Positions 29 through 43,588 of a stretch of 64,000 bases of DNA are shown here, piece by piece (within the stretch, counting starts at the first letter, position 1; every line of letters begins with the position of its first letter). The DNA is from Octopus bimaculoides (Eukaryota). The stretch is from positions 36,562,548 to 36,626,547 of the forward strand of contig NC_069003.1 of the NCBI RefSeq assembly GCF_001194135.2. Reading direction: 5' to 3'. The position numbers were made by a program, and so were the translations under genes. The notes under the pieces are model-generated. The model saw nothing but the letters and a program-made list of their open reading frames with translations. It did no database searches and had not been told where the DNA came from.

Positions 29-363
29 TCATATATAAATAGGTTTTGAAATTTCTACATAACTCCTGCTGCCTGATGTTTGCTTTGTAGCGATGTCAGG
101 ATTCTGACTGACAGCAACATGATATGGAGGGGGGGGTTCATTGAATTCACGAGACATTGTGGATAATGGTGTAGCGTTGGATATTTCACTGGCAAGTTCA
201 GGCTCCGATCTCCAGTGGATATTAAGTTTCGGAAATTTCCATGTTATGGTTAATCCAACAAAGAAAAGTAAAGCTCCGGTCAAACATAACCAGGTGGCCC
301 AGAGTAAACGAGAATATTTCGCTTTGAAAATAACTATTGTAATTCCACAGATTGTTGTCATAC
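29..363 (-). CDS. Terminal exon (end of TM3, TM4, cytoplasmic tail with PPPPY) of claudin-like gene
   Basis: Acceptor tttttatttctactttcag at 364-365; (G)MTTICGITIVIFKAKYSRLLWATWLCLTGALLFFVGLTITWKFP...EPPPPYHVAV...KPIYI then TGA at 31-29. The LLWATWLCLTGALLFFVG segment resembles the claudin-superfamily ECL2/TM4 pattern. Confidence 0.85.
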
Positions 364-427
364 CTGAAAGTAGAAATAAAAGGTATGAACAAATCATTTA
401 CATCACGTATATATATATATATATACA

Positions 428-650
428 CACCGGAGTAAGCACATAAATGTGCAACAAGGTGGAAAAAAGAGTACTCAAATACCAGAGGTAGAGTAATATG
501 CTTTATTTAAAAGCAGCAGAAATATAACAAAAGACTGTTACTTGGAGTTTCACGTTACCGTTCATCTAACAAACTGTCTGATGAACGGGAACGTGAAACT
601 CCGAGTAACAGTTTTTGTTATATTTCTGCTGCTTTTAAATAAAGCATATA
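428..650. mobile_element. Penelope-like element terminus in inverted (hairpin) arrangement
   Basis: Inverted arms 496-566 and 580-649 differ at 3 positions; each carries AATAAA and hammerhead-core sequence; the element abuts a (TA)n tract at ~408-425. Minimal hammerheads and inverted termini are known Penelope-like features. No RT ORF is present. Confidence 0.6.
571..614 (+). ncRNA. Minimal type I hammerhead ribozyme motif
   Basis: Stem I AAACTGT(571-577)/ACAGTTT(608-614); core CTGATGA(578-584); stem II ACG-GGAA-CGT; GAAA(595-598); short stem III CT-CCG-AG; cleavage triplet GTA (605-607). Confidence 0.8.
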
Positions 651-1476
651 TAGTTTGGTAAAGCAGCAATGTATGCATGTAGGTAAGTAGATATAGAGGT
701 AGATAGATATAGTGATGAAATAAGTTCGTAGATTTGGACAAACAGAATCATAAAAAGCAAATGAAGAGAAATTTATGAAAAATTGCTAAAAATACAAAAA
801 TTTATGAAGAAAACTAAAAAAGATTGTAGAAAAAAGCAGGACAAGAATCATAAATATATTGTGAAGGAATTGTGGAAGAAAGAGAGGGAAAGGGGGAAAA
901 TTAAGGGATTACAGAGTCATTATGAAGACAGAAAATTGTAAATTTATTGCAAAAAGAAAAAAAAAAGAGGTTACCAAGTTGTTATCTCAAGTCCTGCTAA
1001 ATAGTTACCTGCTTGTAACTACTTGTATGTGTGGACATAAGCATAGGTGTATGCATGTAGGTAGGTAGATATAGAGGTAGATAGGTATACTGATGAAAGG
1101 GTGGGATAGATGAATTAAGCTGGTAGATATGGACAGACAGACAAACGGACAGATATATAGATTTGTACGGACACACAGACAGACAGGTACATAGATGAAT
1201 AGGCAGACAAGACAGTTAAATAATTGGATAAGTATGTAATTAAATGAATCCAGATAGGTACGTAGATAGCTGGGCACAGATAGATTGTAAATTAAGTAAT
1301 TAAGTTAAATTAACAAATAACTGTAGACTGAGTGCTGTTGCAGCTGTACAAGTTGTTATTGTTTAATTGTGTTGTTTATGTTTAATAACATTGGTCAACG
1401 TGGACACATTGAAATATAAATGTGTGTGTGTGTGTGCACGCATGCATGTGTGCAAATATATATATATATATAAAAG

Positions 1477-1771
1477 AAAACAGGAAGTTGGAAAAACTCT
1501 TTAATATATTTATTCACCATTACACATGTTTCGTTTGCTAATAGGAATTACAAAGTCTTACATTTTGGGTAAACATGTGAGGAATTTCTTATGAGAGATT
1601 TTTTAGACAGATAATTAAATAACATCATTTAATTAAATATTATTTAATTTTCTGTCTAAAAAATCTTTAATACAGTTATCAAATATGTAAAACTTTGTAA
1701 CTCCTATTAGTAAACAAAACATGTGTAATGGTGAATAAATAATACCAAAAGTGTTTCCAACTTCCTGTTTT
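1477..1771. repeat. ~295-bp imperfect palindrome next to (TA)n
   Basis: Outer arms aaaacaggaagttggaaa...ttattcaccattacacatgttt... and their reverse complement; inner arms agattttttagacagataattaaataa / ttatttaattttctgtctaaaaaatct. Confidence 0.85.
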
Positions 1772-1831
1772 GTTATATAACTCTGCAAACAATATTTCCA
1801 GAATTTTCAACTCTAATATGTACCTCAATCA

Positions 1832-1873
<42 letters not shown>

Positions 1874-2144
1874 TCTAAACACCAACCTTTACCAGTTTCC
1901 TAGCAAGGTGATATCCCCCCTCTTGTCAGACATGTTTCACAGAAGACAGAAACAAACAAACAACAACTGCATGTATGATGGCAACACTTCTTTACAACTA
2001 TTGTGTGATGTCAAGGCAAGGAAGCACTAACACACACACACACACAAAAGCTTATTTCAGTTTCTGTGTACTAAATCCACACCGAACAAAATATGAGTTC
2101 CTGTTTGCTACAAACAAATGGTGAGATAAAATATAATTCATGCA

Positions 2145-2590
2145 ATCATCATCACCACCGCCACCACCATCATCATCACATCCTTCTCCTTATCATTTTA
2201 TCCTCCAGTTTTCCTGATGGGATTGACTCTACTGCATGTTACCCTTCATTTTGATCATTTGACATTTTATCCTCGTCTAATCTTCTCAATATTTCTTCCC
2301 ATGACTTCCTTAATGTTGTTTTGTCATGGCTGCCTAACACCATCAGCAATCAACAACACCCGTCTACCCATCACCCCCCCTCCTTCATTCTAACCACTTG
2401 TCCACACTTTCGCTGTCGCCTTTCTCTTTATATAAAGCCTGACATCTTTAATGTCGATGACCACATTTGTCCACTCATGCTCCATAAATGACACATACTT
2501 GCCTCATTTATCTCTCCAGTCCTCTTAGATCTTAACACATTCAATATTTATGACTCACTGTCAACCTGCAACAACACCACATCCTTTATA
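2145..2590 (-). mobile_element. Decayed RTE LINE 3' end with (GAT)n tail
   Basis: GQVVRM-like and KTW-E-I-like remnants on the minus strand, ending in a CAT/CAC triplet tract at ~2145-2180. Confidence 0.5.
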
Positions 2591-2999
2591 GTTTTGTTCT
2601 TGTTCAAATAATGAAGTCCTTTGTTAATAACAAAAATAACAACTCTCTGATCTTCCACATTTTTCTTAGGCTACAACAACAACAAAACATTCCGTGGAGT
2701 TGAAAGAACACTTTTGTGAAATCAGCACATTGGAAACATCGAGTGCGGCTGCATAAAGATGTCATATGGTAGAGATGGGATGTACAATAGAATAATCTTT
2801 TGGCAATAGGTGTAGGAAAGATACAATAACTTAAACAATAAAAAGTAATAAAACTATACAAACAAGCATAATAATTGAAGAAGCATTTTTATACAAGAGC
2901 CCAGAGATTGTATGTGTGTTCTACATATTTCATGCTATATAGGACACATACTGCTTGACATCATTTTAATATTTACCATTGAGTCAAATATTAAGCAGA

Positions 3000-3210
3000 C
3001 AGCAAGCTGGCAGAATGGTTAGCATGCTGAGTAAAATGCTTAGAGACATTTTGTCTGTCCTTATGTTCCGAGTTCAAAATCTGCTGAGGTTGAGCTTGCC
3101 ATATCATTGTTTCAGGGTCGATAAAATAAATACCAGTCATGCACTGGGGTCAATGTAATCAACTTAGTCCCTCCCAACAAATTGCTAGCCTCGTACCACA
3201 ATATGAAACC
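3000..3210 (+). mobile_element. SINE family B (core like ctttgcctttcatcctttcggggtcgataaa..gtaccag)
   Basis: gagctggcagaa head, gagttcaaa B-box-like segment and conserved core. From memory the core resembles the Meta-SINE domain; unverified. Confidence 0.75.
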
Positions 3211-3294
3211 CTGGTTTACCATTAACTCTTGAAACTGGTCATGTCTGGCCGTAATATCCTCCTTGATCTACTTGTCAAGCAGTGGTAGAGGATA

Positions 3295-3462
3295 AGCACA
3301 GACAGACAGACACACATACAACGGGCTTCTTTCAGTTTCCGTCTACCAAATCCACTCACAAGGCTTTGGTTGGGCCAAGGCTATAGTAGAAGACACTCAC
3401 TCAAGGTGCCACGCAGTGGGACTGAACTCAGAACCATGTGATTGGGAAGCAAACTTCTTATC
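3295..3462 (-). mobile_element. SINE family A, 5' part
   Basis: gggcttctttcagtttccgtctaccaaatccactcacaaggctttgg...gtgccacgcagtgggactgaac. Confidence 0.85.
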
Positions 3463-4169
3463 GTCTATCGCCTTCGTCTACATAGAAATGAACAATTTTG
3501 AGTACACTTTTTAGCTTGAAATTTATATTTCTTTTTCAAATAATTCAGAATATAATTTGGTATCTTATGAGTTTGCTCATCTGATGATTGATACAGCTAT
3601 TAAAAATCATGGAACCATTTTCAGAAAAACAAATTATACATAGAAATTAAATCCAAGACAGATAAATATAATGCTTGATCAGATTAGAAGAAGAAACACT
3701 GATATTTATTGATTTCCAACATAGATTGTTATTTTCCCACAAGCAATCATGTTATAATTGTTTGCAACTAATTTTGATTTCTTTGCTCTCGTCTGTTAAA
3801 AAGACTATGTTCGTTACAGTAATTGCAGGACTTAATTAAAGATTAAACTATCAAGAAAAAAAAAAGTTATTTTGCTTGGTCACAGATTAAAGTGCAACTG
3901 ATCCCGTTTTTGTTATAAATTAAAAATGCAAATCTTTCATTCATTTTTACATCTGATTTTCTATGCTGGCATGGGTTAGACGACTATATTATTAAGACAT
4001 AGTTTTACAACTGGATGCTTTTCCTGTCATTAGCCCTTAGCTCTTTGTAGAGTAAGGGATATCTTATTCCACACATCTTTGAAGGTTCAAAACTAAGGGA
4101 CACCCACTGACAGAGAAATGACAACAACATCATCATTTTAGTTTGTGATTTGGGGAGGAGAGTAAACAC

Positions 4170-4325
4170 ACACACACAACAGGCTTATTTCAGTTTTCAA
4201 TCACTGAATCAACTCATAAGGTTTTGGCCAGCCCAGGACTTCACAGTAGGAGCTGGCACAAAGTGGGATTGAACCTGAAACCACATGGTTGGGAAGCAAA
4301 CTTCTTAATCACACAACCATATCTG
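4170..4325 (-). mobile_element. SINE family A, 5' part
   Basis: Diverged copy with the same motifs. Confidence 0.7.
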
Positions 4326-7300
4326 CATCTCACAATCCTAGAGAATATGAAGAGTTGAAAGCACATTGAAAATATTAAATTAAGTCAACATAATTCAGTT
4401 TCCTGAGATTGCTTTTAGACTTCCAGTGTTTAAAGACATTCCACCAAACCCATACAACAAAACCAGGAAATCTATTCTATTAACATGGTGACTTAATTAC
4501 TAGAAATGGTAATTAGTTGCAACTGGAAGTAGAGACAGTGGCAGTAGTGTGGTTGAGTTGGGTTTACCAGTTATGGTGAATAGTTCTGAGAAGTTTGGCA
4601 ATTCCTTATATTCAGGCTGGCTAAATAATACACTGTTAAAGTTGGCGACAAATTAAGGCTTCACAAGAAGATTAATTTAAACTGATTTGTAGAGAGCATG
4701 GATAATTAGGTATAACGAGGTGTGTAAATGAGGACTGTATAAATAAATGCTGTAGGTTAATGAACTAATGAGTAATTAGAGCAGAGCAGACAGATAGACA
4801 GAGAGGATAAAGATAAAATAAGGCAAAACCTAAGAAAACTCGTAAATAAAGAACATTTGACAGTCGGCAGCGAAGGTAAAGAAATGAGAAAACCTCTTCA
4901 AAATGTAATCAATATTGAAGACGAGAAGTAAGAGATAAAAATTACTCATTCTCATTTGATATCCTAAAATGACTGATAAGATTTAATAACTGAAAATGTT
5001 TGTGAACTTTTAAACATTTTGATTTTACTCATAAAGTTTACCATTGGTGGCCCAAGGTGGTTATAGAGGTGATAAGAATAGCAAAATCAACCCCAGGAAG
5101 GAATTTATTTCCCCTTATAACTTTTGAATACAACAGTAAGTAAAATGCGATGAAGTTTTTTTGCGCCAACATAAAAGAATGTGAATTATATTTAGAAGAT
5201 GAAAGTTATGATTAAGTCTTTGTTGAAGGTATTAATGGCAAGAGTAAGGAAGTGAAAAAGGTTTAACGAAGGATTAAAAACTATGCCCTAAAAACCAGTT
5301 TGCTCAGAACCTGCAGCCATTTTGAGCGAAATAAAGCAGTAACGCATATATTACTTAACAGGAAAGGAATTTATAATCCAATCTTTACAAATAAAAAGAA
5401 AAGGTGTTTTGATGTTTAGGGACATCTGAATGCTTCTTTTAAAATGCAGTTAAACTTAACAGTAAAACGAAATCATTATTGGGACTATCGTATTAGTAAA
5501 TGACTTACAAATATGGAAGATAACTCTTGTTATCCTATTTGAATCATATAAATAGTTTTACAGTTGTATTTTCTGTCAATGACATTGGCCCTCCAATCAT
5601 TGTTACACCTATTATTTTTAACCCATTCTCATTTTAATTCTGTCACATTCAAACATTCCTTCCCTGTTTGCTGCTGGAAGTCAAACATGAAAGATAAACA
5701 CCTCATCCTTCCACACAATTTCATTTTACTTCATTCACTCTCAGTTTAACAGACAACATTTTACTTCTGCAATACTCCTTAGTATGACAGCAAATAGATC
5801 TAATTATTATATGGGAATAGTTACTAAAGACTGGACTGACTCATGCCACTTTCCTGGTCATTCCTTTTTTAGGTGTAGCTGAGCCTCACAATGCAAAAGT
5901 GTACATATTTCTGCTCTAATATGAAGATGTTGCAAATGAGTCAACTGTCTTTTGACCTACCAAAGAAATAAGATTAGTGCAGCTGATTCTTCCTTATTAC
6001 CATCACCGAAATGGGAAAAATAATGTTTTATGGAATTTAATCCAGACACTGGGGAAGAACTTGAAAAGCAGTGACTATTTCTAAAGTGGGATTAAGACAG
6101 AGTTATTATGGAGAAGTTAAAGAAAATACAGCTTAATGAGATTATTAGTGATTGATAATCTCATTAAACTATATTCCATGTAAATGGTTTTCTGGTTAGA
6201 AAACTAATTGAAATGATGAGTCACATATTGCATATATGAAGGATAAAATGTTATATTAAACGAATTTGGCAAAGGAATAAATGATGTTCATAACGGTAAA
6301 GAAGTCAACTTTTTTAATTTGAAATGGCTTACTAATTATATAAATTAATGTTGAAAAAAAAAAAAAAAACACGAAGTAAAGAAGAAGGTGCCAGTTGTCT
6401 GAGGGTAAAGAGTACAGAAACGAGAAAGGAAATTAAAAGTAAAAGAGTGAATGAACAACCCTGATAATCTGGTACGCTTGGGATCCGGGGAGGGCTACAT
6501 TTTCAAACATACCAGCGTATTGGGACTTAGGCTTAAATAAACAAAAACAACAGAATCAGATTTTTTTTAATCAGGTCATCAAAAATGTAATTCTATTTTT
6601 AGCAGCTTCAATATCTACAAAGTTCCTTTTCATCTGTAAATTATGTTTATAAATGTTGTATATTAAGGTTTCTAAACCATCCTACAACAAATAACGAGTC
6701 TCAGCAATATCCATGTCTTTGTGTAATTACTTGACATTTTCAATGATTGTTGGTCCTGAAACTGACATACCTTTCGATCACTTTGCACTAAACTTAAATA
6801 ACACTGCACTTACTTCCAAAAGTTTTGGTTGTTTTTTAAAGCATGTCACACATCATCACCTTTATTTGTCTCTGAATCAGATATCAACAGGTCTTTTGCC
6901 TTTTAATGTCACAAATCTGATGCGACTCTACATGATATTCACACAAAATAGCATTCTGGTTTTCACCTAGTTTTGAATACTATATTATTTCAGTTTCCAA
7001 GTGCAATGTGAGAGCTACATGCTTTCTTTTCACATCTGCCTCCAAAATGGTTCTTCTTATTAAAATTGGAAGATATTTTTCACAAATGGATAATGATATA
7101 ATATAAATACACAAAGGAAGGGCTGCAGTGTTGCCACCATTCTTTTCAATTTGAATGCAAACAGGAACAGAGAGATACCAGCAGCAAGTGATGGTACTTA
7201 GGGACAAAAATGGAAACAAAGAAAACCTGAAGAGCATCGAAAAGCATAAGACTACTTCCATGCCAGATTCATGAAACTTTGCTGTATTCGTGTTTTGTTT

Positions 7301-7714
7301 GTAAACATTTCCAACACATTTAGCAAATATTAAGGGAAAAAGCAAGTTATGATGATACACATCTTGTAACTGCTGGAGATGAAAGTAGTCTTAAATAAAT
7401 ATGTTAAGAATCTTAACAAACAGAGATTTTTATGAAATTTCGCTGATATTTTCTCCCTAATCTTGTTATTGAAGTCAGTCAGTTCTAAACTTGGAGGAGT
7501 TTTTTTTTTTTTTAAGTGGGAGTGGTTCAAGATAAGCAAAGAGAAATTTCTCTTTCTCTAATAAATTTCTCACATCTAAATTAATTTATTGCTCATTTTC
7601 TAATAGAATGTAATTGATAAGAGACAAAAATGAAAAGGTGCAGCAAAAAAAATAGACAAGGATACAAGTTCAGAGATCACTCCTTGATGTCATAGCAACA
7701 GATAAAATATGCCT

Positions 7715-7915
7715 GGTTGAAAGGATTATTATTTCTAAAGATAGATTCTGATTCGTTATGTTCTGAGTTTCAAAATCCCATGGAGGTCAACTTTACCTGT
7801 TATCTTTTCAGGGTTGATAAAATAAAGTATCAGTCAAGGACAGGGATTAATATAATCAACTCCCACACCCGACCTCTTAAAATTGCCGGCCTTGTGCAAA
7901 AGTATGAAACTCTTA
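7715..7915 (+). mobile_element. SINE family B
   Basis: gaggtcaactttacctgttatcttttcagggttgataaaataaagtatcag. Confidence 0.7.
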
Positions 7916-8782
7916 TTTCTACAGTACATTCACTGCATATGAATCAAAAATCTGGATGTTAAACGATGATGATGATGATGATGTGTGAGAGACTGTATTT
8001 GGTTAGTTAGAACAAAAAACAAATAGGATATTATGGCTGGGTATGGCAGGTTTAAATGCTAAATTGTTAATTGCGATATTGAAGTGTATCTTTAGAAGTG
8101 TGTTTGTGATGGACAAGTATTCGACAACAACTGGATATTAAAGAAATTTATAAATTTATATAAACACAATTTGTGTGTGAGAGAGAGAGAGAGAGAGAAA
8201 GAGAGCAGGTGGGAGGGGAGTAGTGTAAGCAAAAAAAAAAAAATTCTAAAAGCTGTATGCTGCTAACAATGGTGCGACACTCCAGTAAGAAAGACCTACC
8301 CTACCACATCGACATCCTTTATTTCAAATATTCTGATTTCATTTACTAAAATGGATGCTTCAGTGTAGCAGAGTGTCTTCAATTTCTTTCTGTTTTTTTT
8401 TTAAAGAATACATCTAGATATTACAGTTTGAGAGATGAAAAAAGAAAAGAAAAGAAAAAAGCTGTTAATCTATTCTGCTGAAGTGAGGATTGAATATAAG
8501 GTTTCACAGAGAAAGGGTTATTAGAAAGTATTTTTGAATGTGAAACAAAAGTCTGGTCTACTAATAATAAACAATGTGAAATTAAACCACAGGCTATAAA
8601 TATAAATGATTGCTCACTGAATTGGTTAAGTAACCGTTTTTAAAGAGAAAAATCTCAAGTATTGTTGTGAGAGATAAATAAACAACAACAAAATAACAAA
8701 CAAAATTTTAAAAAACCCCACAAGAAAGTAAAATGAAAAAGCGAATTGCTGAACGTTGAGCTAGTTTTATATTGATGTTCAG

Positions 8783-9010
8783 ATTACAGGAGCTGGTGAA
8801 GAACTGCACAAAGAACTATCACTAAGAAATCATATTGATCTCAAATCTCTGTCATCTATTTTTAACAGTAAATATATTCCAGAGGAAATTACTTCGGCAA
8901 GAAACACACGAGAAGCTTTCAAACTCCACAAGCAATCTAGGCCTGGCAAAGATGTCTTGAAAGATGTTGATAAAAACTCGGAGATGTTCAGCTTGTTAAT
9001 TTCTCAATGA
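8783..9010 (+). CDS. Candidate antisense terminal exon inside intron 2 (unassigned)
   Basis: The open frame starts just after an in-frame TAG, with two frame-compatible AG acceptors (8782, 8789). 75 non-repetitive codons ITGAGEELHKELSLRNHIDLK...SEMFSLLISQ*. No upstream partner exon was found. Confidence 0.3.
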   Translation: MTGAGEELHKELSLRNHIDLKSLSSIFNSKYIPEEITSARNTREAFKLHKQSRPGKDVLKDVDKNSEMFSLLISQ

Positions 9011-9035
9011 ATATAAATTGAAACAATAACCATCA

Positions 9036-9094
9036 TTGCCGCTGCCACCACCACCACCACCACCATTATCACTACCATCACCAGTGCCGCTGCC

Positions 9095-9125
<31 letters not shown>

Positions 9126-9308
9126 GTACTACAACTACTACTAGAGCTACTACCGCCACCATCACTACTACTACTGCCACCGCCACCATTACTACTATTG
9201 CCATCACCACCACAACTATCCACCATAACCATCCACCACTACCACTACTACTGCTGCTGCTGCTACTACTACTACTACTACTACTACCACTACCACTACT
9301 ACTACTAC
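9036..9308. repeat. Compound (CAC)n/(TAC)n triplet microsatellite
   Basis: Direct reading; it explains the poly-P/Y/G/V ORFs. Confidence 0.95.
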
Positions 9309-9934
9309 TCAGTGTCTATACAGTACAGTATAGACTGCCAGAAAAATGTCTCATAACAGGTTCAGACCACAACTGTTTTGAGGTTGGAAACAGTCAAAGA
9401 GGTCCGCATCTGCACCAGACTTTAGACATTTTATTTTATTGACCCAGAAACTGAAGACAAATCTGACCTCAATGGGATTTAAGCTCAAATGGACGTAACC
9501 AAATAAAACAAGGCATTTTGCCATCTCTAGATCAGTGTATGCTTAGAGAAAGATGTGCTTAGAGCAGTGTGTGTTTAGTGTGGTGATGTATGATCAGAGT
9601 AGTGTGTGTGTGTTGAGAGAAGTATGTACCTAAAATTCATTGCATACATCACAGATTGTGTATAGAGAGAGAAAGCAAACAGTGACCTGAAATGCTTACA
9701 GTAGGAAGACAACTGCACACATTGTGCTTATATAAAATCAAACAACTAAATATAAAGAGAGATTTTTGCAAATGTTTTACTGGAAGTCAACATAATTCTG
9801 TTTATGTCTCACTGAATAAGTAATGGAAGTAATGGAACTAACATGGTAGTTTCACGGGAAATACTAAGTACATTAACAACATCAGGATACACTAAGGAGA
9901 GTAATAACAGAAGGATACACTAAGGACAGTAATA

Positions 9935-10128: not shown

Positions 10129-10129
10129 T

Positions 10130-11490: not shown

Positions 11491-11535
<45 letters not shown>

Positions 11536-18246: not shown

Positions 18247-18288
<42 letters not shown>

Positions 18289-18310: not shown

Positions 18311-18566
18311 CACAGAGAATTAATATTTTAAATATGTACACTAATAGCACAATAATTTAGGAGTAATATATACATGCTAAGAAAAAAAAGAAAAAAAAAC
18401 AGAGAAAAGAACACCATTAATATAAATGAATATAACTGAAATGAGTGAAATAATAAATTTCATTAATGTTTGTATCAAAATGTCGACAGCTAAGCAAAAA
18501 GTTTTGTTTGTTTGGATATAGTTTTGACATATTTTTGTTATGGGCTGAAGAGGATTCTGCTGACAA

Positions 18567-18895
18567 TACACACACACACACACACACACAATATATATAT
18601 ATACACACACACACACAATACACACATACACAATATATATATATACACACACACAATACACACATACACAATATATATATGCACACGCACACACAATACG
18701 CACACATACAATATATATATATATACACACATACACACATATATACACACACACATACACACATATATACACACACACATACACACATATATATATACAC
18801 ACAATAAACACACAATATATATACAAACACATACACATACATATACACACACACACACACACAAATATACATACATACAAATATGTATGTGTGTG
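18567..18895. repeat. Compound (CA)/(TA) microsatellite with higher-order period
   Basis: Repeating caatatatatatatacacacacacacaatacacacataca-like units. Confidence 0.9.
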
Positions 18896-24064: not shown

Positions 24065-24241
24065 CAGCAAATGCTTGTAAAAGAATTGCCAATAATTTCA
24101 GGAATCTAATAATGCATCTGTTTGTTTTGGATTTACCCAAATACCAAAGCCAAACCACTAATGTAATCACAGAAGCACCTCCAAGACAAGATCCTAAAAT
24201 TTCCAGTGTGTACGCATAAGGTAACCATTCTAGGGGATAAT
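24065..24241 (-). CDS. Internal exon (TM2, intracellular loop, start of TM3) of claudin-like gene
   Basis: Acceptor ccttcttttttctttttcag and donor GCTG|GTAAGT; 177 nt, phase 1/1, open: (D)YPLEWLPYAYTLEILGSCLGGASVITLVVWLWYLGKSKTNRCIIRFLKLLAILLQAFA(G). Joins in frame to both flanking exons. Confidence 0.88.
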
Positions 24242-26895: not shown

Positions 26896-26929
<34 letters not shown>

Positions 26930-30785: not shown

Positions 30786-30830
<45 letters not shown>

Positions 30831-31492: not shown

Positions 31493-31576
<84 letters not shown>

Positions 31577-31734: not shown

Positions 31735-32275
31735 TATGGTTAGTTTAACTATAAATAAAGGAATCAGAGGAAGGAGTCTCATAAATTGATGAGTCAGAGA
31801 TGAAGGTTTTCATCTACTGACTCCACAGTCCTTATATTAACTTCCTAACGAGGTGCTGTGTTGCTGTTGTGTGGTGCTTAATGAGTTACACTGTTGTGCT
31901 TTCATAAAATGTTCAGGAACTCTGAATTGTTATGTTTGACATGGAGAGAGATGTAAATAGCTCAAAGCATTTCATGGCAAGAACAACATAGCTACTACAT
32001 ATGTAAGCAGTAAGAGGAGTATGAGAGAGGGGGGGGAGAAAGAGAGAGAGGGAGAGAGGGAGAGGGAGAGATATACAGGGTTGTATGTATACTTACCAAG
32101 CATAAGACTGTTAAGTGATCTCCACAGAGTTCACTCTCAGTGTCAAGAAACTTACTTGCAGAGTGGCTAGAAGCAATTACAACACAATAGAAGGAAGTGT
32201 TTACTCATTGCAAATAATATTACGCTTCGGATTTCTGGCCAACTACTGTATATCGTTAAGTCTAATTAAAAAAGG

Positions 32276-32311
<36 letters not shown>

Positions 32312-34129
32312 CACACTTTGTTGAAAATATATTTTTAACTTCTCAGTCTTTCATATTTTTTCTTGAATAACATTTCTGAGAAATGGAACAAATTCCCTGA
32401 ACTGACAGATATACCAAACTATCATATTTTTTCATAATCAAAGGAATGGCAAGTGAATTTCCACATACTTTTGCACAAGTTATCACATTAATGTAACTGT
32501 TCACTTGGTAATGGCAGTAATAATCTTTAAACTGTCAGATATTTCTCATAAGAAATAACATCTCCCCAAGCTTAAAAAAAAAGAAGGAAAAATGAAAAAA
32601 AAAGAAAAAGAAAAAAGAAGAAAAACCACCGATGCAGTCACTATTAATGTTTATAATTTTCTGAAACTAGTGACCTCGTCTCTTGTATGGAATACAAATA
32701 ATCCAAAATGCTACAAGATTCTGATGGAATTAAAGTTGTTGTACTCAATATTAGCAAAGTGTAACGACCAAACAACATCCAGGTTAAACTCATTTCTAAA
32801 AGGTCATCAAGCTTAGAATCAAAGCAGTTCATTGGATTTGAACTGCAGAGATCTTTAGTAATCACCTACCTCAACAAACTGGTGGCCTTTTTTTTCCCCT
32901 ACAGCTCCTACAAGGCCATCATCCAAGCTATGTCATCTCTACTGCTGTTGCAGCGACCTCTACTCGCTGGCCTTGGATGGTCATATGTCTTGGAAACCTT
33001 ATAAATTCTATCCAAGACACATGGTTTTCTCTTGAGGAGAAAATAACACTTTTTGCACTCCCTTAATTACTGGTCCTTTTCAAAATCCAAGTAAACTTTA
33101 CAGTCAATTATTATTTTCACCTCTTTCAAACTATATTGAAGATTATATTCCTAAGAAATTCATTTTTCCAAATAAACAAACAACTCCATCTGTCTTGACA
33201 AAGAATCTGCACCTTACTCTGCCCCCCCCCCACTGCCATCTTCTACAAATGTGTTAAAGTTATCAGAACAGTTGTTGTAGTTCCTAAACAAACTGACTAA
33301 CCCTAACCCTATACACTGAAACTCCTCATAATTACACTGTTTCACCCTTCTTTCAACCATGCTGTGTCTCACTGCTGACTGACTCTATACTCCAAGCAGA
33401 ACATGGCTGATTCACCATGAAATAGTCCTGCCAAGCACTTTAACTGCACCAATTTAAAATATTCCTTCATCCTTCATCCTTCTGTTGTAACTGGGATGTA
33501 GCGACTGTGGAATATGACCCCTTCATCTCACATGAAATGATGTACAAAAATGTGCGTATGTGTGTGTGAAAGAGAGAAAGAAAGAATGTGTGAGTACCAC
33601 GTGTGTGGGGATGTGTATGTGTCTGTATGTGTGTGCAAATGGGTGTCTGTACATGCGTTACTGTGTTAATGCGTATGTGTGTAGATGTGTGTGAGTTGAA
33701 AATTCAACCTTCTTGTACCGATGGAATCAACTTTTGATGTTGTTAGTTATTTCTTCTCAAAATATAATCTGCAACATATTGTATGCTTCTAGTTTTTGGC
33801 TCCATTTCTCATTAGGCTATTTATGCATGAACATATGCTCAGACAAGGACTGAACTCACAACTTTTTATTGTATGCACACTTCTGGCACTTTTATTCACC
33901 ATGCTACACACATAAGTGGAAACGTACTGTTAGTATATTGTGATTCAAATAGAGATACTTGGGTTCAATCTCAGACCAAGAATATGAAATATTCATGGCA
34001 CTTCCTGACGACAAACAAAAACTAAAATTATCCAAATGAAAGAAAAACTAGAAACATAAAGTGAAGAATGTCTCTGAAAATTCCATGGAACTAAAAAAAA
34101 AACCCCCGGAATCTCAAAAATTAGGCATA

Positions 34130-34315
34130 GACACAGGTTGGCTGTGAGGTTAAGAAGTTTGTTTGCAACCATTTGATTTAGGGTTCAGCCCCACTATGTG
34201 GCACCTTGGGCAAGTGTCTTATACAATAGCCCTGGGCTGGTGAATGGATTTGGTAGAAGGAAATTGTGAGGAATCTCATTGTGTGTGCGTGTGCATGTGT
34301 GTGTGTGTGTGGGGT
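34130..34315 (+). mobile_element. SINE family A, 5' part
   Basis: ggctgtgaggttaagaag...ggcaccttgggcaagtgtc. Confidence 0.75.
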
Positions 34316-34550
34316 TATGTTTCCTTGTCTTCTTGACATCATGTGAGTGTTGTAAATTAACGTCATTCATTTCTAAATTTCTAATATGTTGCAAAAACAT
34401 GTCTGGTCACAGGGATATATCACCTTACTTGGAAACTGATGAGGGCTGGCAACAGAAAGGACGTCTGGTCATTGAAAATCTGTCTTAATAAACCCTGTCT
34501 GACCGATGCAAGCTTGGGAAAGTGGACTTTAAATGATGATGATGATGGTG

Positions 34551-34582
<32 letters not shown>

Positions 34583-34889
34583 GATGATGATGACTAGTCT
34601 GATTTACAAACAAGATTTGAGAGCTAATTGATAGCCAAAATGCAAATAAAATAAAAAAAGAATACCCACCAATCAATAATTGAGAATTTAGAAATGATCT
34701 GTTTTTCAGATATAATATCTGGAATTCATAAATGTTTGGAAGAAAGAAATCGAAGCTGACATTAATATTTGCAATGTTTAAAACATGAAGATATGAAAGC
34801 ATTAGTTTCCAAATAAAGACAAAATGTAATCAGTGTCTGTAGAGTGTAATGGGGTAGAAAATTAGGGTTGTAAGGGTTAGGAAATTAGG

Positions 34890-35195
34890 GTTGCTGTAGC
34901 TCAGTGGTTAGGGTGTTGCCCTCACAATCTAGTGATCACAGGTTCAATTTCCAGACTGAGTGGCATGTTGTGTTCTTTAGCAAATCACCTCATTTTACAG
35001 TGTTCCAGTCTACTCAGCTGTAAATGGGGTCACCCTCCAATGGAGCAGCCTTCCAGCCAGGAGGCAATGTTGGCCTGCTCCTTCTAGCCAGTGCGGTGGC
35101 GTCATTTGATGGCTAAAACAATGCAAAAGCGCATTGTGACCAGCAATGTAGAACAGCATCTGAAAGTTTGATCAATCACATGATCATGTGATGTG
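34890..35195 (+). mobile_element. tRNA-derived SINE family C
   Basis: A box tagctcagtgg, B box ggttcaatttcc, followed by a non-tRNA body; a related diverged copy lies at ~49205-49390. Confidence 0.7.
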
Positions 35196-36747
35196 AATAA
35201 GTAGATCTAATCGCCAGCAGGAATTTAGGCTTTCAAAAGTTTCAAATCACACAAAAATAACAAAAAAAAAAAGAAAGAAAAAGAAAAAAAAGAAAAAGAA
35301 AAAAAAGAAAAGAGAAAAAAAAAACTACAATCAAGTCTTTGTTTAGTTTTGGTTCCATCATAGAAATCATGATTGGAAAGTATGTTCCCAGTTTTCTAAA
35401 CCACTAGAAAAATGTTTAACTCTATCAAGTAGATACTTGTGTGTGTGTGTGTGTGTGTGTGTGGCTTCCAAGTGCACTCAGTAGCAAAAGCACTCTATAA
35501 AATACTCTACATAAATAACAACCCATCCCTACTCAAGTCATCCTGCCACTGCAACATGAAAAATAACCAAGAGCTTCCTGTCCTCATTGCTATTAACAAT
35601 GTGGAACAATTCAGAAGCAACAGTTGGGACTATCTCGGCTATGGAGGGACACAATCACCTGGTATTTGCTCCTTGAGAGTATCCACAACAATTGTTCATG
35701 AATGCATGTTTATAATAAAAATGGTACATCATAGCAAATGGTTTTCAAAGACAGACAACAGGCGTGAGAAAAAGAATTAAGAAATTAATCCAATAGAAAC
35801 AAGTAACAGGCGTGATGCCCCCTTTGTGCCCTGATGATTTGGTAAGGTTACTTTTAGCATTATCAGGAAAAGCTGCTTGTTCTAGCAGCAATCATTTCTG
35901 TGAGGTTGCATTTTTATCAAAGAATTTATTACCAGAATAGCAACAGATGCCCCTCAGTTGTTACACTGAACAAAACTAAAATTAATTGAAACAGTTGTCC
36001 CACTTGGAGTCGCCTATCTTTCATTTAGCAATATTTCATTATGGAACCTCTCTGTAGCTTTCTTTTCAATGTTACCAACAGGGAATTGTGTCAGTGTTAT
36101 TCCTGACACAATTCTCTTCAATAACAATGCCTTGGGAACCAGTATACTTCACATCTCCCATTCTCACAGCACCAAATATCTGTAAAACCCCTACACCCAG
36201 TAGCTTTCCCTTCTAAACAAACCTGGTGCCTTATTTTCTTCCTATTTTCCTGAATTCTTCAACCCATTAGAAGACAATCATTTAGATGTAATGGAAGATA
36301 AAAGAAAGAAATTAAAACAGAAGGAATGAAGACTCTGCAAATGATTGACCAGCTCTGAGGGTAGAGTAAAGAGAGAGATAGTGCCATAAGATTTAAGATA
36401 CTTAGATGGAGTGAAAGGAAATCCAAAGATGGAAACATGGGAACGTCCAGGGATGTTAAAGTGATGTGTAATAGATTTTGGCAATCCATGGCAACTGAGT
36501 TGCATGTCCAACAAAGATTTCTTGAATTGATTGGTTAACCTTTGATAAAGTTGACATTTTGATGACAATGCTGTTTAATAAGTTTTACTTGAATAAAATT
36601 CTTCAGACATTGCCCAAATAACAACTACCTTTACTGGCACAAAAATTAAAAGTCATGAACTTGTTGTGACCTTTAATCTCTACATCTGATTTACATAGAT
36701 ATTGAGTGCTGTCTACTTTGTAAGACCAGCTGCAAATTAGAATATCT

Positions 36748-36935
36748 ACATCATCATCATCATCATTTAATGTCCATTTTCCATGCTGGCATCAGTAGGA
36801 TGGTTTGACAGGAAATGGCAAGGCTGGAGAGCTGCGCCAGGCTCCATTGCCTGTTTTGGCACAGTTCCTTACAGCATGATGTCCTTCCTAATGTCAACCA
36901 CTTTACAGAGTGTACGGGGTGCTTTCTATATGGTA
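36748..36935 (-). mobile_element. RTE-tail short repeat ending in (GAT)n (representative copy)
   Basis: catcatcatcatttaatgtccattttccatgctggc...cttcctaatgtcaacc. Other copies at ~3925-4130, 14796-14915, 17085-17240, 39110-39310, 40790-41030, 49680-49860 and 62715-62960, and in opposite orientation at 27790-28050 and 34420-34592. Confidence 0.75.
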
Positions 36936-37192
36936 CTAGCTTACACACACACACATACACGAAAGGAAGTTCCTTTCTCAATAAACCTTTATTTATTATC
37001 CAGAGAGACAATTTCTATCATACAATTGCTTTCCTCCAGCCCCAGAGTCCAAGGAAAGCCCCATCAACCCTAATAAACCTATGAGAAATAACTTTTACTG
37101 CCTAAAAACTACCTTGTACTGTCAGCTTATTTGTAAACATAGTAATAATGTTTTATTATGTATCTGTTGAGGAAGGAGAGAGCATGATGCTA

Positions 37193-37230
37193 TAATAATA
37201 ATAATAATAATAATAGTAGTAGTAGTAGTA

Positions 37231-37269
<39 letters not shown>
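37193..37269. repeat. (AAT)n/(AGT)n microsatellite
   Basis: Direct reading. Confidence 0.95.
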
Positions 37270-38098
37270 GAGAATTAAATCCAGAGGATAGTTTTTTTAG
37301 CAGTGGTTGGTAGANNNNNNNNNNGGTAGACCTCATCAGTCCACCTCCTCCTCCTCCTCCTCTTTGTCATAGTCCTCTCATTGTTGGTAAACAGCAAGGG
37401 GGGGGGGTGAATCGTTGCCTTATCTGTCAGCTGTTAGCAGCTTACATGACAGGCAAACTTGTAGCTTGTGAAATAAGAGAAGTGTAAGCTATTTGAACAT
37501 CTATTCCAGTCAGGCAGACCAGTATCAGTCTCTTCTACTCCATGTTCCCAACAACCAAATTCTTTAATTACATTCATTGCTATGTCATCATTCCCCACTG
37601 GGAAATAAATCGACAAACAGCTACAAATAATCACCAGTTTCTTTTTTGTTTTGCTTGTTTGTTTTTGGCTTTATTAGATGTCAGAAGCATCGAGAAGGGG
37701 GGAGGGAAGGAAAGTCCAAACAGACAGACAGAAGAATAACATGTAGTATTAAAGCAAAAATTTCTTTTGAGGAGAAGGAAAAAATATTGAAATATAATCA
37801 TAGAACGGGGCAAGACTGACATACATTCTAAACACTGTTGCTGAAGTATTTCAAAATGAATTAAGGGAATCTAGATGTGGAGTGCATGAAGAGGGAAAAA
37901 ATAAAGAAAACATTTATTTAATAAAAGCAATCAAGAAGCAAAAAAGAAATTTCTTCTGTAAACGTATGAGAGACAAAAAAAATTTGAAATGTTTGAATTT
38001 AATAAACAGCAACAGGGAGGAATAAGTGAGAAATTGAGATTTCTAAATTGTTAATGATTTTGCATGCAGAATAATAAAAGAGATTTGGAAAATGTAAG

Positions 38099-38315
38099 GG
38101 AATGGCTAGCTGTGCGCTTAAGAAGTTCAGTTGACAATCAAATGGTTTGGGTTCAGTCCCATCGCATGGCACCTTGGGCAAGTGTCTTCTACTATAATCC
38201 CATGTCAATCATTGCAAGTGGATTTGATAGATGGAAAATGAAAGGTGGCTGTTTCCTAACCACATCGTTCAAGGTTCAGTCCCACTGTGCAGCACCTTAG
38301 GCAAGTATCTTTGAC
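38099..38315 (+). mobile_element. SINE family A, 5' part with duplicated head segment
   Basis: ggttcagtccca...gcaccttgggcaagtgtc occurs twice (~38150 and ~38273). Confidence 0.7.
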
Positions 38316-39641
38316 TATACAAGAGGGAGGGAGGTAAGGGTGGGGACAGCGGCAAAGAGGGTCAAAGTTTCCTCTGACGTACCCTACCTGTTAATTAAGG
38401 TTGGGCATCAAAACTGTCCTCACTCCCAGGCCCTGAGAACTCTTGCTAAGCCGCTGATGTGTGGGCTCTTGTTTATAAATCAGAATTTGGTCATTAATGT
38501 TATCCACTGAAGTAAAGGATTTTCAATCCAGAATGATTTTTGCTCGTTTGTTTTGTTTTTTATGTTACCAGGAGGGGCGAGGGGGGGGGGGAGTTTTATT
38601 GTTGCCAGATGAAGTCTTTTGGAAAAAATGAAGGAGGATGTTTTCTAAGGATAGAAAAACAGGGCAGCAGGACTGTACAAGAAAACATTCCACACCACCA
38701 CTACCACCACAACCACCACTGTCATCATCATCATTTACTACCTTGTGTTGTATTAATCTATTTGATTTTTATTTGCTTTGATTTGTCAGCTGAAGCAAAC
38801 TGAATCTATCCCAGTCAACTCTCACAACTTTAGCAAAAATGGTTCAAACATAAAGAAAGATGGATAAAAATAATGAGAGAAGACAAAAAGAAGAGTTCTG
38901 ATATCAAAACTTATTTAATTATTCTAAAAAGAATAATTGGATCACATCAAATCCAAATTTGCATGAGAACAACAACAAAAAACCTGACCCGGTTAAAGAT
39001 AGCAGCAGAGTTTGCTAGTGGAATTCACTCATGAAGAAACAATATACAGATCACCATTGTCATCATCACCACCACCACCACACCACCACCAACATCATCA
39101 TCATCTATATCATTATCATCATTTAACATTCAAGTTCCAGGCCAGCATGGGTTCGAAAGTCTGACAGGATGTGATGGGTCCAAGGACTGCATTGTGCTCC
39201 AGGGTCTGATTTGGTATGGTTCCTAGAGCTGGATGCCTCACCTAAAGCCAATCACTTTCACAGTGTATAGTGGATGCTTTTTTCATGCCACTGGTACTTG
39301 TGAGGCTGCCTTTCAGCTTGCAAGACTATGAAAGCAAAGACAATGAGGAGCAGCTCTATGCGCTGAGGGAATGGAGAGTTAAAGTATGAGAAATAATTAT
39401 GAAAAAATCATTGATGAAAGTAAATGAATAATAATTGACATTGGTGTATTGTTTGCCATGTGTTGTTACTTAAAGAGAGTTCACAGAACATAACAGCATG
39501 AAAACACATGGAGACTATCCAGTAGATTAGTTAAACATGCTCTTGTCAAAATAATTCACTAATGATTATTATTAGCAATAAAAGTTAATTTTTTGATGTC
39601 AATTCATGTATAGACATGCAAAGTTCAAAAGTTATCCATGT

Positions 39642-39698
<57 letters not shown>

Positions 39699-41032
39699 CG
39701 CGTGCAATTTGATAAATTTGTGGGCTTGAATATTCATGACACATGGCAAGTTTTAAAAAAGGTAAACCAAGTGTTGTAGTGTGCAGAATGGTCACAGAAG
39801 ATAACAGTGTGGAAACAAGCAGAACATTTCCAGTATAATAATTCAAATATTTTCTGAACAAAATATTTCACAAATAGTGCCAAAAGCAACAGCTTTAATT
39901 GGTTGAAAGATAGCCAATGAAAACAGTCTTTCAACTATGTTCTACTAAAAGGGTCATGTGACCCTGTTAGTAAACTGATTTCTTGTTTCACAGTAACTGC
40001 CAATGATGTGGGTACGTGTGTGTGTGTACATTTGTATAAACTTTAATAACAATCCCTGTAATAAATTTAATGAAATATCAAGTTTGGTTTCCTTATTTTA
40101 TGAAACTTCAGAATTTGCAGTTGATCAAGAAATGCTTTGGCTTTTCATGGAATAGGGAAGTCACTGGGAGTTTCTTAGGACAATATGCCCCCCCACTCCC
40201 TGCCCTGTCACTTATTCCTCCCCGCCCCAACAAAGAGGAAACATTATTGATATGTTATCCACTTCTACAGGATGGAAAAGAATATAGATGTTGAACAAGA
40301 TGGAATTCAGAAACACTGAACTAGTGTACAGAATATGTCCATTCTCTCTTCTCTGTCTCATAAACTGTCAACATTCATTTAAAAGACAAAGGTCAAAGAA
40401 ATTTATATAATGAAGAGGGAAATGACATCACGGCTAATTTCAAGTTTTCTTGAGAACATTTGAGAGACAAGTGGAGAGCAATTAGATGCTATTCCAAGTG
40501 GTTGGCTTATTTCTCACATTTTGGATGCCAAGAATCACACATATAATAAATGGCATCATTATGATTAAATCAGGCTGTCTTTTATTAAACAATGAAGGTT
40601 GGTAAATGGATCTTCATTGGTTTTGATGAGGAATATTGGCCAGTGTTTGATCAACTAATCTACGGACTCCTTCAATTATAATATTAGTGGCTGAGTATTC
40701 CAATGTATTCTCTTATATACTGTGCTTGTGTGTTTATGTTGTTATATCTTCTTAATATTGTACTTGGAAACTGGCAATGATTGGCCTACCATCAGCATTA
40801 TCATCATTTTTAATGTCTACTTTTTCATGCTTGCAAGGGTCAGATGGAATTTATTGAGGCAGATTTTTAATGGCTGGATGCCCTTCCTGTCACCAACCCT
40901 CACCTGTTTTGAAGTAAAATAATACTTCCCATGGTCAGACAATGTTGTCATCAGAAGAATGGAAACAAACAACACTGCTTGTATGACAATGGTGCTTGTT
41001 TACAACAATCAGATTATGTGATGCCAAGGAAA

Positions 41033-41200
41033 CACACACACACAACAGACTTCTTTCAATTTCCATCTACCTAATCTGCTCACAAGGCTTTGGTTGAGCC
41101 AGGGTCTATAGTAGAAGACAGTTGTCCCAGGAGGCGCACAGTGGAATTGAAACTGAGACCACATGGTTGATAAGTAAGCTTCTTAATCGCACAGACACAT
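41033..41200 (-). mobile_element. SINE family A, 5' part
   Basis: Family motifs in reverse. Confidence 0.7.
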
Positions 41201-42779
41201 GTGAAAAACTATTTTACAGCAACTCATTAATGAACGATGGAATAAATAGCAAATTGTTTACTGAAATACGTTTTGGCTATGAATGAGAAGTGTGGCAATT
41301 TACACAAATCTTCTTTATCTCAGATGCAGAAAACTGACACAAGTTTAAATTGAGGCACCACCAGAAACCCTACATGCACTCTTCCAGTCAGATGCAAAAG
41401 TTTGGGGCAATGACACTTAATGTCGGCACAATATACACACACATATATTCAACAAGTTTCTTTTCAGTTTCTATCAACCAAATCTACATAATGTCTTGGT
41501 TGACCAGGAGCTATTGAAGAAAACACTTGTTCCATTGTGTCACTCAGTTAGATTAAACAAAGGAACAAAAAATATATATAAAAAGTCTAGCAGTATATTT
41601 TATTTTCTGAAATTATTTACACCATTTAGCTTTAATTCCAGCCCATCTACCTCACACCCTGCCTTATCTATTTTTATACAGACTTTTAGGAGACAGACAG
41701 TATTGTTCTATTTTGAATTCCATGTCTAGTGGAAAAGGAAAGACTATTAATTTAACTCCATTAAAGTTCTGGTTATATTTACTGGAGTAAAGCATTAAAT
41801 TAGGAAAATAACGATTTAACGTAATCATGCTAAATATCTGATGGCATGATACTAACTAATTAAAAGAGGCTAATTACTCCCCGATACAAGCATAATCACT
41901 GTTTACAAAATGTTTCTTTGCTATGTACATCTATCGAAGAGTTCGTTTGAATAGATTTCAGGGTCACTGAGTAGGGACGAATCTCTTTTGATGTAAACTT
42001 GAGACAATGAGTGGAACATATATAAACAAGTTAGTGCCCCAGCATGGCCATGGTCATGATAAAAGATAAAAGAAGCAATAAAGACTGGGTATACATTTTC
42101 ACCTCATCCCTCTCTTACTCATTATCATCTTCATACTTTATAACTTCCTTTTTTTCAGGTCTAGAAATACATTTACAGAGTGTTCATTAACCCTAATTCT
42201 ACCGGAAAAAACTCTGGTTCCATGATATTAAACTTCCTGTGGTAAAGAGATGTAAATAAGAACTTTTACATCAAAATTTTATGTCATTCTATGTTTCAAA
42301 CAGCAGCTTCATGAAGACAGAGTTAGTTTATTAAACTCTGCATATTTTTCAAAATTAATTGAAACAAAGGCAGTGTATTTGAACAGGAATGTTGTAACAA
42401 AAGGGTTAAATTATTCATAAGGACTCTATTTCTGTCAGAGACTTCATAACCTGCCAAAATTTACTGTTGTCATTGTCATTATCAAAAACCTCTGCAGATA
42501 ATGTAGGGATCACTTAAAAATAAATGTAAATAAGGGATCCAGCTGTTTTACAACTGGATGGATGCCTTAACTGTCACTAACTGGATGTCCTTCTTGTCAC
42601 TAACCGTTACCTATATCCCAAATGAGGGATATCTTATTCCACATATCTTTGAAGGCACAAAGCCAGGAGACAACCTATTGACTAGAGAAGTGATAAGAAT
42701 GTCACCATGAGTAGCTGAGAGATTTCTGGAGAAGTGCAAATGTCAAAAAACACAGAGACACACACATACGGAAAAAAAG

Positions 42780-42968
42780 ATACATAAATACATACATATG
42801 TGTGTGTGTGTGTGTGTGCAGGTATGTACAGAAAAAGCTTCGTTTTGTATCCGTCCATCAAATCCACCCACAAGACTTTGGTTAGGCTATATAGAAGATA
42901 TTTGCCCTCAAGACCACATTGTTGGGAAACAAACTTCTTATCCACACAGCTATGCGAGTACTTAGCCA
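42780..42968 (-). mobile_element. SINE family A, 5' part
   Basis: Family motifs in reverse. Confidence 0.65.
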
Positions 42969-42982
42969 TGTCTGTACCAAAT

Positions 42983-43200
42983 TACAAGGGGGTGGGGCTG
43001 AAAAGTTCCTGGCTTTAAGGGTGTCGCGAAAGGCCTGGTTGGAGGCCCAATCATCTGAATTCTTTTACAGGGCTTAGAAAACCTGAAGGACCACTGTAAT
43101 AAGTGTGTGAATCTGAGAGGGGAACATGTTGACTAAAATCGTAATTAACTGATCCTCCTGTATTTTCTTTTAGTCAAACTTTTCAGCACCCACTCGCATA
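42983..43200 (+). mobile_element. Mariner-derived MITE (~215 bp)
   Basis: Imperfect TIRs ggggctgaaaagttcctggct / agtcaaacttttcagcaccc with TA at both ends. The interior encodes a transposase C-terminus LLQGLENLKDHCNKCVNLRGEHVD*. Confidence 0.75.
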
Positions 43201-43293
43201 GGACGGTAAAAGCTGACATTACACTGTGATGATGCTGAAAGAGAATTACAGAATAAAAGTTATTGAGAGAAACACTCTCAAATATACACTCAC

Positions 43294-43588
43294 CTTGTTT
43301 ATTTATTATTTCACCATCAGTTGCAATNNNNNNNNNNNNNNNNNNNNNNNNNNNNNNNNNNNNNNNNNNNNNNNNNNNNNNNNNNNNNNNNNNNNNNNNN
43401 NNNNNNNNNNNNNNNNNNNNNNNNNNNNNNNNNNNNNNNNNNNNNNNNNNNNNNNNNNNNNNNNNNNNNNNNNNNNNNNNNNNNNNNNNNNNNNNNNNNN
43501 NNNNNNNNNNNNNNNNNNNNNNNNNNNNNNNNNNNNNNNNNNNNNNNNNNNNNNNNNTTATAGCACACATAACAACTGACAGAATCAT
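43294..43588 (-). CDS. First coding exon of claudin/PMP22-like tetraspan gene (partly in N gap)
   Basis: ATG at 43588 (ACAATG context) gives MILSVVMCAI, then N gap 43328-43557, then IATDGEIINKQ. It ends at a strong donor CAAG|GTGAGT (43293) in phase 1, matching exon 2. A possible acceptor gtttgtgtttctcaag lies just upstream, and an in-frame TAG at ~43641-43643 bounds the frame. Confidence 0.65.

Follow-up and report, generated by a model that had tools for sequence, protein, structure and literature searches.

LOC106873969 of Octopus bimaculoides encodes a conserved four-pass membrane protein with an invariant PPxY motif in its tail

A stretch of 64,000 nucleotides (nt) from Octopus bimaculoides (NC_069003.1, positions 36,562,548 to 36,626,547; hereafter the window) was analysed, with a focus on three minus-strand exons that an earlier note, made from the sequence alone, had joined into a claudin-like gene. 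The window has a G+C content of 36% and contains six runs of N. The three exons constitute one real, conserved gene under purifying selection, which is already catalogued as LOC106873969 and is uncharacterised. Its product is a four-pass membrane protein with a PPxY motif, the ligand motif of WW domains, in the tail that follows the last membrane segment. The protein probably represents a very divergent tetraspan of the claudin fold, with the LHFPL proteins as its nearest relatives, and membership of either the claudin or the LHFPL family is not demonstrated.

Gene structure

The coding sequence (CDS) is distributed over three exons with GT/AG splice sites and phase 1 at both junctions (Table 1), and the coordinates, when re-read in the sequence, agree with those of the earlier note. 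Exon 1 starts with ATG ATT CTG, continues through 230 N and ends in AAA CAA G, with gtgagt as its donor. Exon 2 is flanked by the acceptor ttttctttttcag and the donor gtaagt, and the acceptor of exon 3 is tttctactttcag; both acceptors comprise a polypyrimidine tract and CAG. The first transmembrane segment (TM1) is encoded by exon 1. Exon 2 covers the last part of extracellular loop 1, TM2, a basic intracellular loop and the beginning of TM3; TM3 is completed in exon 3, which also encodes extracellular loop 2 (very short), TM4 and a predicted cytosolic tail of about 67 amino acids (aa).

Table 1 Positions of the gene, its motifs and associated features in the window
Feature	Location	Strand	Remarks
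Coding exon 1	43588..43294	minus	ATG at 43588..43586; encodes TM1 and the greater part of extracellular loop 1
Coding exon 2	24241..24065	minus	177 nt; phase 1 to phase 1
Coding exon 3	363..29	minus	TGA stop at 31..29
Assembly gap inside exon 1	43328..43557		230 N; O. vulgaris has 140 nt at this place, encoding TTVVATGFQVAGMCIPMWWTYDIYDRHYYCGLFKIPWKTCHEGRCTV
PPPPY (PPxY, WW-domain ligand motif)	122..136	minus	P204, P205, P206 and Y208 invariant in both paralogue groups
Y-V-E-I (YxxPhi-type motif)	50..61	minus	Y[VM]EI in all orthologues
C-terminal I-Y-I (hydrophobic-x-hydrophobic-COOH, candidate class II PDZ ligand)	32..40	minus	Read in the sequence
RefSeq start exon (XP_052831930.1)	32103..32097	minus	7 nt, ATGCTTG/gtaagt, encodes 'ML', joined to exon 2
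Host sequence	Octopus bimaculoides chromosome CM046623.1 (GenBank, GCA_001194135.2)		100% identity over window positions 1–42103

The intron lengths given earlier, 19,052 and 23,701 nt, are arithmetically correct, and as three assembly gaps lie within the introns they are estimates of the true lengths. The orthologous CDS spans approximately 70.6 kilobases (kb) in O. vulgaris and O. sinensis, compared with 43.5 kb in O. bimaculoides; the introns of the two species differ from those of the window by many insertions and deletions, with the aligned blocks still 85–93% identical. On the 3′ side, an assembly gap of 1,193 N starts directly past window position 1 (L007 42104–43296), 28 nt after the stop codon, and the 3′ untranslated region is therefore cut off in the O. 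bimaculoides assembly. Cuttlefish transcripts extend approximately 2 kb beyond the stop codon.

The gap in exon 1 and the length of the protein

The readable part of exon 1 amounts to 65 nt, comprising 31 nt at the 5′ end (MILSVVMCAI), which agree with the N-terminus of all orthologues, and 34 nt at the 3′ end (IATDGEIINKQ and 1 nt). The gap-free loci of O. vulgaris (OX597836.1) and O. sinensis (CM016881.1) align with both flanks of the gap at more than 90% identity, and possess 140 nt opposite the 230 N of the window. With 140 nt in the gap, exon 1 has a length of approximately 205 nt, or 68 codons and 1 nt, so that the two flanks are continuous, in frame and in phase 1. The apparent reading frame across the 230 N works because the difference between 230 and 140 is a multiple of three.

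Judged from these loci, the O. bimaculoides protein is 238 aa long, rather than the approximately 268 aa that had been estimated by taking the gap at its written length. The full-length protein of O. vulgaris and O. sinensis (P0023, XP_029650076.1) also has 238 aa, and differs by one residue over exons 2 and 3. The motifs of extracellular loop 1 fall in the gap and are unreadable in the O. bimaculoides assembly. A tblastn search detected no copy of the hidden centre of exon 1 elsewhere in the window, where extra exons or a paralogue were also looked for and none was found.

Conservation, transcription and annotation

The translation of exons 2 and 3 is 100% identical to the RefSeq entry 'uncharacterized protein LOC106873969' (P0001, XP_052831930.1), and the three-exon layout is common to the O. 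vulgaris locus, the O. sinensis locus and the paralogue described below. Over the 171 codons of exons 2 and 3, O. bimaculoides and O. vulgaris show 17 synonymous codon differences and a single non-synonymous one, which indicates purifying selection; the introns of these two species are approximately 85–93% identical. At the protein level, identity is 84% between Octopus and Argonauta and 74–77% between Sepia and the octopods.

The Logan run collection lists spliced transcripts in 83 blocks, and Logan contigs of 2.3–3.0 kb hold the uninterrupted 720-nt CDS of the 239-aa Sepia orthologue (P0003). When aligned to the window, Sepia RNA contigs end at both exon junctions, that is, at both ends of exon 2. 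Moreover, an intron-retaining Sepia contig (L008) and an intronless one (L012), which are 99.5% identical, part at CDS nt 388, the exon 2/3 junction, and the point of divergence lies behind a pyrimidine-rich tract ending in CAG. The runs include SRR31864756, an RNA-seq run of Sepia esculenta (PMC11917092).

That the exons might be chance open reading frames (ORFs) joined by chance splice sites, or the remains of a pseudogene, is an explanation that could draw on the fact that most of exon 1 is unread in the O. bimaculoides assembly. It is effectively refuted by the 17:1 ratio of synonymous to non-synonymous differences, by the identities across species and by the spliced transcripts.

The RefSeq model XP_052831930.1 comprises 172 aa, without TM1 and extracellular loop 1, and is shortened because the gap hides exon 1. 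The counterpart of its 7-nt start exon in O. vulgaris reads GTGGTTG/gtaggt, with GTG in place of the ATG and GTAGGT as the donor, and the region is conserved no better than intron. It is unlikely to be a real alternative first exon beginning with ML; this sequence comparison suggests that the annotation probably resorted to the start exon because exon 1 is hidden, and that it lies outside the conserved protein. An older O. bimaculoides model (P0024) has 110 aa, from exon 3 only. The concern that automated annotation may miss or split the gene thus applies to this assembly, in which it is broken into models of 172 and 110 aa, but not to O. sinensis and O. vulgaris, for which complete models exist. 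XP_052831930.1 should give way to the 238-aa model once the gap has been filled.

Membrane topology and predicted structure

Hydropathy analysis reveals four hydrophobic segments, at about residues 1–27, 77–100, 110–141 and 145–170, which bears out the tetraspan architecture proposed in the earlier note. The TM2–TM3 loop is basic, with four K/R and no D/E residues, and by the positive-inside pattern both termini, and with them the tail, would be cytosolic. Extracellular loop 1, composed of the approximately 47 aa after TM1, is predicted to be extracellular and rich in β-hairpins, and carries the pattern PxWW...Y-x-G-L-[FW]...PWK...C-x4-C. In the orthologues, the loop reads WW-x(9-10)-Y-C-G-L-F-K-I-P-W-K-x(1-3)-C-x4-C, and the paralogues have GLW or GIW.

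The AlphaFold2 models are of low confidence, with a predicted local distance difference test score (pLDDT) of 41 for the run with three sequences, and of 51 with a predicted template-modelling score (pTM) of 0.29 for the run with seven. The order of the elements is stable in both runs, with TM1 followed by four short strands (residues 29–61) and three helices. In the seven-sequence run, the helices comprise residues 2–27, 76–106, 113–141 and 146–176. About 4–6 residues, corresponding to extracellular loop 2, separate the last two helices.

Distribution of the family and its two paralogue groups

When 1.84 billion representative proteins were searched exhaustively with a HMMER profile, four hits were obtained at E ≤ 0.001, all of them cephalopod, and word-indexed protein searches likewise returned only cephalopod proteins. 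Judged by these searches, the family is restricted to coleoid cephalopods, in keeping with the earlier suggestion of a lineage-specific protein, and comprises two old paralogue groups. Group A, to which the window gene belongs, contains the proteins of Octopus (238 aa), Argonauta hians (235 aa) and Sepia (239 aa). Group B contains P0006 of O. vulgaris (246 aa), P0007 of Argonauta, and P0008 and P0014 of Sepia/Acanthosepion pharaonis; P0006 matches the group A profile with E = 2e-19. Both groups are present in octopods and in cuttlefish, and the duplication is therefore older than the octopus–cuttlefish split. In O. vulgaris, the P0006 gene (OX597836.1, 28.20–28.26 Mb) and the orthologue of the window gene (47.96–48.04 Mb) are on the same chromosome at a distance of approximately 19.7 Mb, which rules out the paralogue as a tandem neighbour.

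The residues invariant in both groups include P26, W28, W29, G41, P46-W47-K48, C50, C55 (C-x4-C) and P204-P205-P206-x-Y208. Between octopus and cuttlefish, the identity is 89% in TM1, 68% in extracellular loop 1, 82% in the intracellular loop, 50% in extracellular loop 2 and 79% in the tail.

Motifs of the predicted cytosolic tail

The PPPPY sequence sits in a 27-residue block of the tail, SNATPLSTMSREFNEPPPPYHVAVSQN, which is invariant in the four aligned orthologues, from octopus to cuttlefish. The PPPxY core is invariant in all seven sequences, representing two paralogue groups and at least three genera (octopus, argonaut and cuttlefish among them); the PPxY motif pointed out in the earlier note is thus real and conserved. 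The IYI C-terminus, which had also been read there, is invariant in the orthologue group: all group A proteins end in EISKPIYI, and the IYI end is missing from group B. The group B tail possesses two PY motifs, SPPPY and PPPSYEEI (ISPPPYCDPPPSYEEI), the second of which belongs to YEEI. The PPxY motif is the only tail feature common to both groups, and is therefore the one that points to an ancestral constraint. Sequence comparison confines Y[VM]EI and the free I-Y-I end to group A, in which they may provide further sorting or PDZ contacts.

Three cuttlefish entries (P0004, P0009 and P0012) appear to run past IYI by WLVNKEMRKNRKIPLPK. Stop-codon A-to-I editing or read-through (...KPIYIWLVNKEMRK...) was rejected as the explanation, since TGA is present in all DNA and RNA contigs; the W in the extensions results from a gene caller that translated the TGA stop as Trp (Sepia contigs L008–L017).

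Family assignment

The assignment to the claudin/PMP22 family made in the earlier note is not supported. The Pfam profiles PMP22_Claudin (PF00822) and Claudin_2 (PF13903) show no match at E ≤ 10 to the window protein, its orthologues or a full-length chimera. Below threshold, Claudin_3 (PF06653) aligns with the Argonauta orthologue (E = 1.5, 9.3 bits against a gathering score of 28.7), and Claudin_2 with the cuttlefish paralogue (E = 0.065, 13.4 bits against a gathering score of 29.1). The nearest curated family is L_HMGIC_fpl (PF10242, LHFPL), which is reached solely through group B paralogues and at its threshold: with a gathering score of 25.2 bits, P0006 (25.4 bits) and P0007 (26.9 bits) pass by 0.2 and 1.7 bits, in a match that is collinear over TM1–TM3. 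A literature search returned nothing relevant for the gene and protein identifiers or for LHFPL in combination with cephalopod.

The claudin signature of loop 1, W-x(17-22)-GLW-x(2)-C-x(8-10)-C, is represented by the W, by GL[FW] and by two cysteines, with different spacings. As for the claudin fold, defined by a left-handed four-helix bundle and a five-stranded sheet to which extracellular loops 1 and 2 both contribute, the low-confidence model contains four strands in loop 1, and extracellular loop 2 is too short for a fifth. A true claudin/PMP22 junction protein making paracellular strands, as the earlier note had read it, would account for the four transmembrane segments, for the W...GL[FW]...C...C of extracellular loop 1, for the end in Y and an aliphatic residue, and for the weak matches to Claudin_3 and Claudin_2. 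We nevertheless consider this reading highly unlikely: PMP22_Claudin and Claudin_2 are without a match at any useful threshold, the C-x4-C is placed 7–9 residues past GL[FW] rather than as C-x8-10-C directly after GLW, and extracellular loop 2, which is required for the trans and cis contacts of claudins, has only about 6 residues.

On balance, the evidence tilts towards LOC106873969 being a real 238-aa four-pass protein from a cephalopod-restricted branch that is claudin-fold or LHFPL-like, with a PPxY motif that recruits WW-domain proteins. Several results weigh against this reading. Apart from the Claudin_3 alignment, no Pfam family matches the window protein or its orthologues at E ≤ 10, and L_HMGIC_fpl matches neither these nor the cuttlefish paralogue. 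Comparison of the family with the solved LHFPL4 and LHFPL5 (sequences taken from PDB alignments) using hhalign gave probabilities of 0.2–0.3, from shallow alignments (Neff about 2 and 1.3) of low sensitivity, and BLASTP against the same two proteins gave no significant match (best E = 1.3). Two family profiles, run with hmmsearch against PDB sequences, returned nothing, or chance hits to ribosomal mL60. A Foldseek search of the PDB was not significant (best E = 0.24, TM-scores of 0.19–0.27), and the structure model is itself poor (pLDDT 51, pTM 0.29). In addition, the C-x4-C spacing and the near-absent extracellular loop 2 are unlike those of claudins and LHFPL, and WW proteins other than ligases can also use PPxY.

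Proposed function

Among the top 12 Foldseek ranks, nine are claudin-fold (seven TARP gamma-2 chains, LHFPL4/GARLH4, MP20 and a designed claudin fold), none of them significant. LHFPL5 serves the hair-cell transduction channel, LHFPL4 serves GABA-A receptors and TARPs serve AMPA receptors. The octopus protein could similarly assist a channel or receptor as an auxiliary or chaperone subunit, with I-Y-I anchoring the complex to a PDZ scaffold and the PPxY merely tuning its turnover. This explanation is consistent with LHFPL being the sole curated family reached, by way of a paralogue, with the presence of TARP gamma-2 and LHFPL4 in the top structural ranks, with the invariant C-terminus of the orthologue group and with the C-terminal PDZ ligand that TARPs carry. 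However, the link to LHFPL is marginal and is not repeated by profile–profile comparison, and group B keeps the PPxY without the C-terminal motif, so that the PPxY, and not the PDZ ligand, is the ancestral constraint. We regard an auxiliary subunit of this kind as unlikely.

PPxY motifs bind the WW domains of NEDD4-family ligases, and when small membrane proteins carry such motifs, the partners are most often HECT ligases of the NEDD4 type. Established here are a conserved four-pass membrane protein and the invariant PPxY of its tail, from which we infer the rest of the mechanism. Recruitment through the tail would begin with the docking of WW domains, most probably those of NEDD4-type HECT ubiquitin ligases, on the invariant cytosolic PPxY. 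The protein, possibly together with membrane partners held through the transmembrane bundle or extracellular loop 1, would be ubiquitinated and endocytically sorted. In group A only, additional sorting or PDZ-scaffold contacts would come from Y[VM]EI and from the free C-terminus, I-Y-I.

The PPxY and the PDZ ligand may instead bind non-ligase WW proteins (Yorkie/YAP, Kibra or MAGI), in which case the tetraspan would act as a membrane tether for Hippo/polarity scaffolds. The WW domains of YAP and MAGI are established PPxY binders, and MAGI has both WW and PDZ domains; the invariance of the PPxY and its presence in one tail with a hydrophobic C-terminus would agree with such a tether. The paired PY motifs of group B, with their acidic residues (PPPSYEEI), speak against it in that they are similar to those of NEDD4 adaptors, and we consider the tether quite improbable.

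With the recruitment of WW-domain proteins as the preferred reading, this small coleoid family with an invariant PPxY is a candidate lineage-specific membrane adaptor for NEDD4-type ligases or other WW proteins. No new principle is indicated, and the gene is an ordinary uncharacterised one. A more far-reaching proposal, which we hold to be at least as improbable as the tether, is that of a coleoid innovation, in which a stripped-down claudin-fold tetraspan, nearly devoid of extracellular loop 2, had the ancestral role of bringing WW-domain machinery to a membrane complex, and the group A tail became a bivalent WW and PDZ ligand, for example for MAGI-type scaffolds. If true, it would mean a cephalopod-specific junctional or synaptic complex that is coupled to ubiquitin-dependent turnover.

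Other features of the window

A tRNA-Leu(CAG) gene (53304–53387, plus strand; Rfam 54.6 bits, also called by ARAGORN) is located approximately 10 kb upstream of the start codon. Intron 2 contains an AC-rich tandem repeat (18566–18880) with a period of 76 nt and about four copies, which yields spurious minus-strand ORFs of 151–186 aa with a high content of C, V, Y and I. Another low-complexity ORF of a similar kind is present at 54500–54958.

Comparison with known systems

The LHFPL proteins (LHFPL5/TMHS and LHFPL4/GARLH4) share with the octopus protein the four transmembrane segments, a long extracellular loop 1 and two cysteines later in this loop. By eye, the likeness to LHFPL5 extends to the start of the loop, where octopus P-x-W, 10 residues and Y-C-G-L-F correspond to P-Y-W, 11 residues and Y-F-G-L-F. 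However, the cysteines are spaced as C-x4-C in octopus and as C-x10-C in LHFPL, and the TM3–TM4 loop of LHFPL4/5 is much longer and contains cysteines, whereas extracellular loop 2 of the octopus protein comprises approximately 6 aa. The octopus tail also differs in bearing a PPxY motif, and a literature search found no paper tying LHFPL proteins to such motifs.

The proteins of the claudin/PMP22/EMP/MP20/TARP group are likewise tetraspans, and the predicted four β-strands of loop 1 and its W...GL[WF]...C...C-like signature resemble theirs. The octopus C-terminus, with Y and an aliphatic residue, is comparable to the -YV of claudins. The octopus protein is unlike this group in the absence of a match to its hidden Markov models, in the spacing of the cysteines, in the minimal extracellular loop 2 and in the PPxY of the tail.

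The adaptors and targets of the NEDD4 family (NDFIP1/2, LAPTM4/5, TMEM127, LITAF and connexin-43) show no sequence homology to the octopus protein, for which the Pfam scans returned none of their families, and differ in the number and arrangement of transmembrane segments; the analogy with them is one of mechanism only. They resemble the cephalopod family as small multi-pass proteins with a PPxY in a cytosolic segment; within the cephalopod family, group A has a single PPxY and group B has two, for which the topology suggests a cytosolic placement. Connexin-43 likewise has both a PY motif and, at its C-terminus, a PDZ ligand that ends in isoleucine.

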